Of a stretch of DNA of 64,000 nucleotides, positions 15,188 to 18,600 are shown in pieces. The notes under the pieces were generated by a model. It made no database searches, was not told the origin of the DNA, and was given only the letters and a program-made list of their open reading frames with translations. Every line of letters begins with the position of its first letter. The stretch's first letter is position 1. Position numbers and translations under genes: made by a program. Origin of the DNA: Macrostomum lignano (taxonomy: Eukaryota). The DNA is taken from positions 186,001 through 250,000 of the forward strand of contig NIVC01001014.1 of NCBI GenBank assembly GCA_002269645.1, in the 5' to 3' direction.

Positions 15188-15633
15188 TCAAGCAACCTCT
15201 GCAGCCGCAGGAACATCGGCATGGCAGAACATCCGGTAAGCACTGTTTGCGTCAGTTTCAAGCACATCACCGGCCCCTCTAGCCAGCAGGTCGGCCAGGA
15301 TGTCCTTGAACTGTGGTCGCAATGGCGCGGCCTGCCAGCAGGTGTGCATGAGGCTGGCCAATCGACTCGGACAGTCGGACGGTGGCCGGAGATGGCGTCG
15401 GCCAGATTTCACCACGTCGGCCACCTGAGAGTTGCTTAACAATCCGTACGGCTGAAGAGCTCCAGTGGCGATCTCCCAGAGTGTGACGCCGTAGGACCAG
15501 ACGTCTGACGCCACGCTGTACCGTCCGGTGCGCAGCGTCTCAGGCGCCATCCAGCGCACGGGGACGCCGCAGGATGCCACCAGTTGGCGACGGACGCGGA
15601 TGGCCGAACGGCGCAATCGGGCCAACCCGAGAT
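15188..15633 (-). CDS. InR: InR-like last exon: kinase C-lobe and short tail
   Basis: Phase-1 join gives DLGLAR; [28 protein letters not shown]; TGA at 15190-15188. Confidence 0.95.
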
Positions 15634-18600
15634 CTGCAGAGGTGCAGGTTTATGAGGATTTTCATGGCAGCACGAGAATCGACCAAGGACTACTAAAGTA
15701 GAAGGACGCAACAGTCGAAATCTATGGAAAATTTTTTGAAGGCCACTTTACGCCGACAAAATACACTACGGAGATAGGAAGTTTTCTTTTTTTCAGCACA
15801 AAACTTGTTATTGCTTTCTGTAAAAGGCAGACCAAATGTTCATCTTTTGATATGTTGTATTTTATTTTAATAACAAGTACACAAGTACAAGTACAAGCAC
15901 ACACAGGCCCCTCGCAAGCTTGCATACAACCAACTCAAACTCAGCAGTTAAAATGCCGAACCAACCTGCCACCACGACGTTGAGTCGTTCGTCGAGCAGA
16001 CAGTTTCTAGCCGCCAGGTCGCAGTGCAGCAGGCCGCGCTGGTGCAGGAACGCCATGCCGTCAGCGATCTGCGCTGCCCACAGCATCGCCCGAGCGTTGC
16101 AGACTCCGCTGCCGCCGCCTTCTCTAGCGAGCGCTCTCAGGTAGCGTCGCAGATCGCCGCGCGCCGCCAGTTGAAGCACCAGGTAACGCGGCCGGCTTGT
16201 CGACACGACGCCAACCAGGCGAATCACGTGACGGCAACCGTGGTCGCCGAGCCGCTTCAGCCACTGCGCCTCGGCCAGTAGGCGCCGGCTTTGCCCGCCA
16301 CCGCTGCCGCTGCCACCTCTAACGGCCGCGTCGAAATCTTCAAATGTCGTCTTGACAGCCACCCCGCGGCTCTCCGACGCTGCGGCTTGGGCGACCTCGC
16401 CGAGGTAAACCCGGCCGTAGGATCCCGCGCCCAGCGGCGGCTGCTCCCAGAAGACTCGCAGCTGGCGCCGAGGCAGTTCGTGCCGACCGAATCTTCGTCG
16501 ACGCTGCCAGCGTCTGAGGCGAACCGCGCTGACTGCGACAAGAAGGACGACCGCGGCGACGCCCGCCAGGATGGCAAAAATCAGCTTCGACCGGCTGCGT
16601 CGATGCAACTCGACAAATGGCATCGTCAGATTGACTGGCGGCGTCCAGGGGCCCGGGCCGGACTGGCTGACTGCGCGCACCTGCACCAGATATCGCCGCC
16701 CTGGGCCCAGGCGCGTCACCGCCAGGCCACCTTCCACTTGCCGCTGCCGCTGCTCGGTGCTGTTCCTCCGCCAGTCGGCGTAGTCAATGCGAAGCAGCCG
16801 CGACTGCGGGTTGGTGTTGCCCTCCGCGGCTGAGACCAGCACCTGCGGAATTGGTTGGCGGGCAAGCAATGGCAAGCATTGCCAGTCAGATAGACAGACA
16901 GACAGACAGACAGACAGACAGACAGACAGACAGACAGACAGACAGACAGACAGACAGACAGACAGACAGACAGACAGACAGACAGACAGACAGACAGACA
17001 GACAGACACACAGACAGACACACAGACAGACAGACAGACAGACAGACAGACAGACAGACAGACAGACAGACAGACAGACAGACAGACAGACAGACAGACA
17101 GACAGACAGACAGACAGACAGACAGACAGACAGACAGACAGACAGACAGACAGACAGACAGACAGACAGATAGACAGACAGACAGACAGACAGACAGACA
17201 GACAGATAGACAGACAGACAGACAGACAGACAGACCTCAAAGTGCAGCAGCCGACCGTTCGGCTCCTCAGGCTTCGCCCAGGTGACGACGCCGCTTCGTC
17301 CATCGGCGCTGGGAACGACGTGCAGCGCCCCAGCAGGCAGGGCGTCGGCCAGCGGATCGGGCGGAGTTCGGTAGCAGATGCTTGCAGAAGCGGAGCAGAA
17401 CCGCACGGGCCGACTGCGCAAGGGGTGCTTATAGGGGGCGTGGCAGGCCACCAGCTGCGCGAGAGAAGGGAATAAAACGGTAAAAAGATCGATGAAGTAT
17501 CCTTTGCATAGCAACCAGTACCACCACCATAGCAACGAGTTCTATCTGCCTAGCAGCGCGTTTTATCCCCATAGCAACCTTTATCATCCCCATAGCAACC
17601 TGTATCATCCCCAGAGCAACCTGTATCATCCCCAGAGCAACCTGTATCATCCCCATAGCAACCCATCTCATCCGCATAGCAACCTGTATCATCCGCATAG
17701 CAACTTGTATCCTCCCATGATGACAAAATCTTTAGCTTGCAGTCTAACATCTAAATAAATTTGTTTTGACTTTGCAGGGAGTCCCAATCGTAGAAAACTT
17801 GCATTTAAAATTGGACGATCATGTTTGCATTATGCTACTGTAAGTGAATAAGTAGCGCAGTTTGGGCATTTTAAGCATTTATTCTTTGCTTACAGCCGCA
17901 CCCAATTCGTGTGCGTCATCGGACTTTGGGAGGCTGTGCAAATCCTATTTAATGAGATCCGGTGATGGCAGCAGCTTCCGTAATGATTTGGGATTGGGTT
18001 TAAAATTTCTTCAAGTCAAGTTCATTGCCAAACATATATGATTGACTCTCTAGCTACCAGCATGATCCTGACTGGGGGATGGGCCATTGCGCAGATTTGT
18101 ATGCATTAGCAGGCGGCTTCGTATTACACTGCTCATCCTTTTTCTTGCTCTTCGAATATCGTATCTGGGAATCGTCTCAATAGACACAGACGCGCTTCTG
18201 ACCCCTGTCCCAGGTAAAGGACTCCCTGTCCCAGGTAAAAGACTCCCTGTCCCAGGTAAAGGACTCCCTGTCCCAGGTAAAGGACTCCGAGCCTGATACT
18301 TATGTTTCATGCTCAAGGTTGAATAAATTCCAGAATCGATAACGTATACAAAAGAAAAAATTTCACCTGCAGCTCGTAAGCGGAGAAGTAGTCAAGTTTG
18401 AGACGGCGGCTGTCCAAGGTGATCCTGAGCTGGTCGGATGGAACAGTCAGGAGCGGGCTGGGGTATGACTGCAGCTGCGGTAGGCGGGTGGACTGATGCA
18501 GCCTCTCCGAGCATTTTGCTGGCTTGACAGCAACTTGCGGCTCCCGCTGGCTGCTGCAGATATAGCGGTGTGTGTTTAATTGTTTATTTAAACAGTTTCT

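Follow-up and report, generated by a model that had tools for sequence, protein, structure and literature searches.

Insulin receptors (InRs) are textbook examples of receptor tyrosine kinases switched on through trans-autophosphorylation of three activation-loop tyrosines, which are read by the arginine of the RD (Arg-Asp) motif. In ROR1 and ROR2, which are InsR-related receptor tyrosine kinases, the HRD arginine is replaced and DFG reads DLG. GRKs are active kinases with DLG, and the non-RD receptor kinases XA21 and FLS2 of plant immunity carry Cys-Asp. The plant non-RD kinase EFR signals by allosteric activation of a partner kinase or co-receptor, for which its own catalysis is not needed, and it still needs activation-loop phosphorylation (PMC11259431). 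The insect InR decoys SDR and DR2 are InR paralogues without canonical kinase signalling that act as modulators (PMC7253209). Flatworms have more than one insulin receptor (IR), and EmIR2 of Echinococcus, which lacks the juxtamembrane NPXY motif, has been reported to be expressed and to bind insulin (PMC3923246). We identified an InR-like gene on the minus strand of a 64,000-nucleotide stretch of the genome of Macrostomum lignano (contig NIVC01001014.1, positions 186,001 to 250,000; hereafter the window, to which all positions refer; Table 1). Its kinase domain reads HCD for HRD and DLG for DFG and has an activation loop free of tyrosine. We give about an even chance to the reading that this gene is a real InR-family paralogue that encodes an atypical, non-autophosphorylating, pseudokinase-like receptor.

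Translation of the minus strand yielded the catalytic loop HCDLAARN (16026-16003) in place of HRDLAARN. The HCD codons CAC TGC GAC occupy 16026-16018 with TGC at 16023-16021, and a cysteine, not an arginine, directly precedes the catalytic Asp, as in a non-RD kinase. Exon 8 ends at 15966 (...GTG GCA G/GTTGGT, with a GT donor) and exon 9 begins at 15633 behind the acceptor CTCTGCAG. This junction is in phase 1; the split codon G/AT encodes Asp and is followed by CTC (Leu) and GGG (Gly), giving DLG. The activation segment (15966/15633-15539) is Arg-rich and holds zero Tyr between DLG and APE, and its only two hydroxyl residues are both Ser. Other elements of the catalytic and structural set are present, namely the glycine-rich loop (G-loop) GAGSYG (16431-16414), VAVK (16362-16351), the alphaC Glu (16272-16270) and, within HCDLAARN, Asp and Asn. 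The K, E, D, N and D of phosphotransfer are all retained, together with the motifs DVWSYG, CW and RP. Gatekeeper and hinge read LQLA (16176-16165). The HCD and DLG readings, the Tyr-free segment and the intact GAGSYG, VAVK, alphaC Glu and catalytic D/N/D had all been proposed in the original prediction, and each was located again in our translation, with splice sites that agree with the DLG junction.

The junction was tested via intron conservation, using the genomic locus of the kinase's nearest neighbour in the tree described below, an insulin-receptor gene of the trematode Calicophoron daubneyi (P0200, locus L001). The intron of this gene (...AAG ATT GGA G/GTTAGT...TGTAG/AC TTC GGT) cuts the DFG Asp codon after base 1, which is the position and phase of intron 8. 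In the alignment the activation loop of the window kinase exceeds the canonical length by 2 residues, and no micro-exon is therefore missing. When all 332 nt of intron 8 were examined, no alternative exon and no coding potential were found. The original prediction had named transcripts with a different splice restoring DFG and YxxxYY as a possible refutation; the genomic sequence of the intron holds no exon for one. Because the intron is shared with a trematode IR, the loop length is canonical and the intron is noncoding, the 15966/15633 junction, and hence the DLG reading, is well supported.

The spliced model of the gene runs from 30290 to 15188 and comprises eight exons with 1351 codons and zero stops; the seven introns are GT-AG and compatible in phase. 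Pfam searches on this model identified two Recep_L_domain stretches (8e-25), Furin-like (1e-21), fn3 (2.6e-13) and PK_Tyr (2e-62), the second Recep_L stretch being L2, and the C-terminal 440 aa alone gave PK_Tyr_Ser-Thr at 3e-63. The resulting order, L1, Cys-rich region (CR), a shortened L2, three FN3 domains, transmembrane helix (TM) and tyrosine kinase (TK), is the layout of the insulin-receptor family. A Venus-kinase-receptor or ROR identity was ruled out by the L1-CR-L2-FN3 ectodomain. The two M. lignano InRs with HRD that we found in UniRef, P0171 (A0A1I8IAZ6) and P0226 (A0A1I8FKZ1), served as canonical references from the same species. FN3-1 and FN3-2 align with P0171, and a tblastn search with P0171 matched 21493-20741 in exon 5 (E = 5e-34). 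Because exon 2 (acceptor CACCCAG, donor GTGAGA) is entered in phase 1, the model calls for a signal-peptide exon upstream. Exon 4 has a phase-1 acceptor (TTTTCAG) and a phase-2 donor (GTAAAT), the latter fitting the phase-2 acceptor of exon 5 (AATCAG), and its GC content of 0.53 is below that of the other exons. The least certain boundary of the model is the 3' end of exon 5 (donor GTGGAT at 20464). The insert region of this exon holds RIRR and a degenerate alphaCT-like segment (20551-20504). In exon 8 a 21-residue hydrophobic segment (16584-16522) forms the TM helix and is followed by a short Arg-rich juxtamembrane segment (16521-16435). A scan of the eight modelled exons for disabling mutations found none; a stop-containing stretch resembling part of L2 lies in intron 4, however. 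Its length and its NITIKG resemble NLTITQG and VSVPRG of other InRs, which is weak evidence of kinship. It was rejected as an exon since no combination of GT and AG sites holds the frame, and we treat it as an intronic relic.

The relationship of the kinase to known receptors was examined with sequence searches, a structure prediction and a tree. In a phmmer search of PDB the best solved-structure sequence matches were the INSR and IGF1R kinases (~1e-49), with ROR2 at 7e-40. An HMMER search of the FN3-TM-kinase part against 1.84 billion cluster representatives returned insulin receptors of flatworms, molluscs, crustaceans, insects and fish as best single-domain matches. The AlphaFold2 (AF2) model of the kinase, built on a 60-sequence alignment, reached a pLDDT of 86.8 and a pTM of 0.88, with low confidence only in the activation loop (55-68) and the tail. 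Foldseek identified INSR and IGF1R as the closest solved folds to this model (TM ~0.78), and the kinase is predicted to fold like theirs. A bootstrapped neighbour-joining (NJ) tree of kinase domains placed the window kinase inside the InR-family group, on the longest branch of that group. Its sister was a pair of trematode IRs, Calicophoron P0200 and Echinostoma P0004 (72% bootstrap), and a grouping with the canonical M. lignano InRs occurred in just 1.5% of the replicates. Kinase identity to these canonical InRs is about 41-44% (41% for P0171). Ectodomain architecture, similarity of the kinase and position in the tree show the gene to be a true member of the insulin-receptor family. This agrees with the insulin-receptor-like identity in the original prediction, which had proposed a kinase-domain tree and a search for a canonical InR paralogue in the same genome as checks; the tree placed the kinase among InR-family kinases, and P0171 and P0226 are canonical InRs of the same species. 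A second kinase copy within the window was also considered and rejected, the weak tblastn hits near 62000 being translations of a minisatellite. The public models of P0171 and P0226 are themselves faulty at the exon junction of DFG and activation loop, where the former reads VKIGGKSPAEGQAPLPVRW and the beta8 strand is missing from the latter; this suggests mis-annotation at the conserved phase-1 intron.

Since trematode IRs are its sisters in the NJ tree and NPxY is absent from EmIR2 and P0200 as well, the gene can tentatively be assigned to a second, NPxY-less lineage of flatworm IRs. Not every flatworm IR, accordingly, carries NPxY. P0200 and the window gene also have in common a phase-1 intron in the DFG Asp codon. 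Unlike the window protein, however, the members of this lineage (EmIR2, P0200 and P0004) keep HRD, DFG and the YY pair. Long-branch attraction could also yield the grouping with trematode IRs.

The rarity of the motifs was assessed among 34 InR-clade cluster representatives and in a wider sample of 478 kinase domains. All 34 InR-clade representatives carry HRD and none HCD. DFG is present in all but two truncated gene models, and no intact model reads DLG. The YY pair is found in 33 of the 34. The exception, a decapod 'insulin receptor-related protein-like' from Panulirus ornatus (P0233, XP_071552518), is the sole other loop-Tyr-free representative of the clade in the sample; unlike the window protein it retains HRD and DFG and carries a 10-residue insertion in the loop, and it may represent an independent loss of the phospho-switch in the InR family. 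HCD alone is not exceptional among tyrosine kinases, as bivalve JAK-like and crab HTK16/Shark kinases have it, and these keep DFG and YY. The combination of HCD, DLG and a Tyr-free loop was unique among the 478 kinase domains and, judged by the 34 InR-clade representatives, is more than chance. A literature search found no flatworm or invertebrate InR described with these features. As far as our sample and literature searches reach, a retained kinase without phospho-switch and docking tyrosines would be an undescribed type of InR-family member.

To judge whether the changes reflect decay or rewiring, alignment columns were sorted into classes according to how conserved they are in the other 34 InR-clade kinases. 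The window kinase kept the consensus residue in 43/54 columns that are at least 95% conserved (hereafter invariant), in 38/51 of the columns conserved at 80-95%, in 26/83 at 50-80% and in 10/69 below 50%. Retention was thus 80% at invariant and 14% at variable columns (Fisher p = 1e-13, top vs bottom class). This gradient argues against long neutral decay and indicates that the long branch evolved mostly under selection for the kinase fold. Eleven invariant columns are changed: the G-loop (F>Y), alphaC+4 in the regulatory spine (R-spine; M>L), the gatekeeper (M>L), two hinge positions (E>Q and M>A), the HRD Arg (R>C), beta8 (K>V), the DFG Phe (F>L), both columns of the YY pair (YY>RV) and the Leu before PVRW (L>V). 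With column classes that were defined after the data were seen, 10/27 ATP-site, catalytic or regulatory columns were changed as compared to 1/27 others (Fisher p = 0.005). None of the invariant changes touches K, E, D, N or D. Kept chemistry with a lost switch fits these data better than random decay. The original prediction had interpreted a paired loss of the Arg and its phosphosites as coordinated rewiring; the clustering of the changes and the graded retention are in line with rewiring, but the loss is far broader than that pair. As the hinge, R-spine, beta8 Lys, NPxY, C-tail, alphaCT and L2 are altered too, it is no tidy pair.

Losses beyond the switch became apparent when the protein was compared with canonical InRs (human INSR and IGF1R, Drosophila InR, P0171 and P0226). 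The domain order is the same, and the kinase shares HxDLAARNC, WMAPE, DVWSYG and a 'SFYH'-like start of the tail. Whereas canonical InRs have HRD, DFG, YxxxYY and the hinge MELM, the window protein has HCD, DLG, no YxxxYY and LQLA, and it lacks or has degenerate versions of NPxY, PDEWEV, the alphaCT FExxLxN, the Cys triplet, the full L2 and the usual furin site. A motif scan of the whole protein found no NPxY. In a full-length alignment the juxtamembrane segment is ~35 residues shorter than in other InRs and lacks the conserved PDEWEV. The post-kinase tail measures 18 residues; the canonical C-tail is gone and there is no YxxM. Each of the eight cytoplasmic tyrosines lies either at a conserved structural position or within the tail. 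The ligand-binding motif of alphaCT (F-E-D/N-x-L-x-N) is degenerate in the aligned segment, and the Cys triplet, which in InRs forms inter-chain disulfides, is reduced to one Cys. The only R-x-R-R of the ectodomain (RIRR) precedes the alphaCT-like segment, with no furin site at the usual place after it. The canonical InR programme thus seems to have been abandoned at every step, from hormone binding through alphaCT and trans-autophosphorylation to the docking of IRS and Shc.

We propose that replacement of the RD-pocket Arg by Cys, of the DFG Phe and the alphaC+4 Met by Leu, and of the two invariant loop tyrosines by Arg and Val would have removed the phosphorylation switch, and that the absence of the juxtamembrane NPxY, the C-tail and YxxM would have removed every canonical phosphotyrosine docking site. 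Such a receptor would neither be activated by trans-autophosphorylation nor recruit adaptors of the IRS or Shc type. It may instead act as a pseudokinase-like or weakly, basally active partner that would modulate signalling in dimers or hybrids with a canonical InR, or by direct phosphorylation of substrates, and would not be a classical insulin receptor. The analysis shows the sequence, the gene structure, the family membership, which residues are kept or lost and the predicted fold, whereas expression, ATP binding, activity, partners and ligand of this receptor are what we infer. The VAVK Lys, the HCD Asp and the DLG Asp are all present, so it is no classical pseudokinase, though it may still behave as one. 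We favour a functional non-canonical receptor because of the gene's intact appearance, its age (41-44% identity) and its history of constraint. The stronger claim, that selection in a regenerating flatworm maintains it as a receptor with a full ectodomain and a folded kinase that signals or damps signalling without tyrosine autophosphorylation, as allosteric or scaffolding partner of a canonical InR, and that it would be the first pseudokinase-like member of the InR family, is possible but doubtful.

The described systems resemble this receptor in part. The ectodomain of ROR1 and ROR2 (Ig, Frizzled and Kringle) is wholly unlike that of the window protein, and ROR2 keeps its loop tyrosines; compared to ROR-type pseudokinases, the window protein keeps K, D and D. 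Plant non-RD receptor kinases likewise have a residue other than Arg before the catalytic Asp, but belong to an unrelated Ser/Thr-type lineage. By analogy, EFR is the closest mechanistic model for the proposed mechanism, with the difference that EFR needs phosphorylation of its loop and the window loop offers just two Ser and no Tyr. SDR and DR2 have lost the whole tyrosine-kinase domain and keep the ligand-binding ectodomain, the reverse of the window protein. A ligand-trapping decoy of their kind is less likely, because the ligand-binding elements are degenerate and the kinase is retained. The original prediction had described the receptor as phosphorylation-independent, and as constitutive or decoy. 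The non-RD motif, DLG and the Tyr-free loop with catalytic residues kept are borne out, but sequence does not tell a constitutive receptor from a decoy; the degenerate alphaCT and L2 speak against a ligand trap, and the step from non-RD to phosphorylation-independent does not hold in general, as plant EFR still needs activation-loop phosphorylation (PMC11259431).

Several observations weigh against a maintained, functional receptor. Among the 1.84 billion cluster representatives searched with HMMER, no protein was more than 48% identical to the FN3-TM-kinase part, and a word index of 5.8 billion proteins held no identical protein for the kinase part. The ectodomain (625 aa) had no match in this index either; low-complexity words probably swamped the candidates there, but the null nonetheless tells something, since the search would have picked up an identical annotated protein. 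As these collections hold M. lignano proteins, including that of a neighbouring gene, the InR-like gene must be unannotated in them. At invariant columns the window kinase has 11 changes as compared to 0-5 in other long-branch InRs, and a single transition suffices for R>C (CGC>TGC) and likewise for F>L, each possibly recent. L2 is short by ~35 residues, with the stop-ridden apparent relic in intron 4. For the signal-peptide exon there is a speculative candidate only (34526-34436), which is not established and sits antisense to the 5' region of the MEPCE gene. M. lignano is recently polyploid, and redundant copies under relaxed selection are expected. The gene could accordingly be an unprocessed pseudogene of young age, or a duplicate on which selection is relaxed, that is, an old InR paralogue recently fallen into disuse and in early decay, before a first stop or frameshift; we consider this unlikely, though a rival to be taken seriously. 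Absence from all protein collections searched, in which the neighbouring gene is present, the excess of invariant changes, the missing L2 segment with its in-frame relic of five stops, the lower GC content of exon 4 and the degenerate alphaCT motif and Cys triplet would all suit such a copy. GC-rich sequence can, moreover, keep open reading frames (ORFs) open by chance, and exon 8 is overlapped by several ORFs in other frames that are 100-180 codons long. It is harder to reconcile with a frame that stays open over 1351 codons, with 14 canonical splice sites that are intact and match in phase, with a retention so strongly graded by conservation, with intact phosphotransfer residues and DVWSYG, CW and RP, and with changes that are concentrated in one functional class. 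An identity of 41-44% to its paralogues also marks the copy as old, and long neutral evolution would have broken its frame.

The retained K, E, D, N, D and G-loop also agree with the first option of the original prediction, a constitutively active, phosphorylation-independent kinase which, without the RD Arg and a pseudosubstrate Tyr, would adopt an active conformation and phosphorylate substrates whenever the receptor is present or clustered. Its regulatory-spine positions RS1-3 are hydrophobic (His, Leu, Leu), HCD occurs in the otherwise active-looking bivalve JAK-like and crab HTK16/Shark kinases, and the GRKs are an example of active kinases with DLG. We nevertheless find it rather improbable, given that the shift of hinge and gatekeeper from MELM to LQLA (three invariant residues) together with the changed beta8 Lys is typical of relaxed constraint on the ATP site, that no docking tyrosines remain to relay a signal, that the Arg-rich loop has no acidic phosphomimic and that AF2 confidence in the loop is low (55-68). 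A non-RD motif is also no guarantee of phosphorylation independence (EFR; PMC11259431). That the reading is an artefact of assembly, sequencing or splice prediction, with HRD, DFG and YY in the true gene, is very improbable. The region is dense in minisatellites and hard to assemble, and R>C and F>L are single-base differences each, but 11 invariant columns and many other residues differ, the loop changes span several codons, the splice position is common to the trematode IR gene, the 332-nt intron holds no alternative exon and the exons themselves are free of repeats. If the favoured pseudokinase-like receptor is expressed and under selection, it would show the conversion of an InR into a non-catalytic or differently regulated module, in a species that is amenable to RNAi and transgenesis; if the gene is a decaying duplicate, it would be an ordinary by-product of gene and genome duplication.

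Table 1. Exons of the InR-like gene and other features of the window.
Feature	Position	Strand	Description
Exon 1, speculative	34436..34526	-	MAASWRLLKLVVHLILYLVFLMLATVNGERL, signal-peptide-like; phase-1 GTTGGT donor; unconfirmed
Exon 2	29397..30290	-	L1 and most of the furin-like Cys-rich region; Pfam Recep_L_domain 4e-19, Furin-like 9e-19
Exon 3	26963..27211	-	End of Cys-rich region and start of L2; splice sites; aligns with CR/L2 boundary of other InRs
Exon 4	24591..24747	-	Middle of L2; spotted by eye in the frame translation
Possible L2 relic	24500..24590	-	In intron 4, in frame with exon 4; five stop codons
Exon 5	20465..21497	-	End of L2, FN3-1, first half of FN3-2, insert region; alignment with other InRs
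Exon 6	18367..18546	-	Remainder of the insert, then the second half of FN3-2; its counterpart in the alignment with P0171 is NLRHFTSYELMLVAC
Exon 7	17236..17454	-	First half of FN3-3 (starts LVAC); tblastn of P0171 E = 8e-8
Exon 8	15966..16842	-	Remainder of FN3-3, TM, juxtamembrane, kinase N-lobe, catalytic loop; AG acceptor at 16842
Intron 8	15634..15965	-	332 nt, GT...AG, phase 1; splits the Asp codon of the DFG-equivalent
Exon 9	15188..15633	-	DLG, activation loop (to 15539), C-lobe, 18-residue tail, TGA stop 15190-15188
Intron repeats of InR-like gene	16883-17235; 21507-22178; 22776-24227; 25749-26944; 27542-29353; 30292-30560		
Satellite array	2-6981		~355 copies of a 20-bp unit (AAAGCCAATCAAGCTGATAA)
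Rhodopsin-family GPCR ORF	12196-13422	+	Single exon, 408 aa; Pfam 7tm_1 3e-42
MEPCE/Bin3-type RNA methyltransferase	34992-36572	+	99-100% identical to M. lignano UniRef A0A1I8HY77
Minisatellite, 28 bp	35586-35995; 53837-54652		Unit CCTCCCAGATCCTCAGTTGCTGGGCCAG; second array reversed
Fibrinogen C-terminal domain, two exons	40478-41633	+	Pfam Fibrinogen_C 3e-10 and 5e-16; 16-bp minisatellite between
Gene pieces	49379-50290, 57294-58229, 59121-59813, 62703-63083	-	WASH-complex WAHD (4e-29); CP2/grainyhead-like

Mini- or microsatellites, a different one each time, fill nearly all introns of the InR-like gene, and several of them directly abut splice sites (Table 1); examples are (CAGA)88 and units of 37 bp (x40), 8 bp (x147) and 24 bp (x75). 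The repeats of intron 7 are open in one frame and merge with the ORFs of the exons into an ORF of 559 codons. The ORF of a G protein-coupled receptor (GPCR) follows the InR-like gene directly downstream, on the opposite strand. Neither three start variants of this ORF nor two forms of the last InR exon had an exact match in a contig collection, which apparently lacks M. lignano contigs.

The satellite array takes up 7 kb, the first 11% of the window. The 28-bp minisatellite in the intron of the MEPCE gene recurs in reversed orientation 18 kb away. A second UniRef entry for MEPCE (P0272) skips a 25-residue segment and may represent an isoform or a different gene model. The CP2/grainyhead-like transcription-factor pieces, with CP2, SAM_3 and GRHL1_C domains, are spread over ~6 kb.

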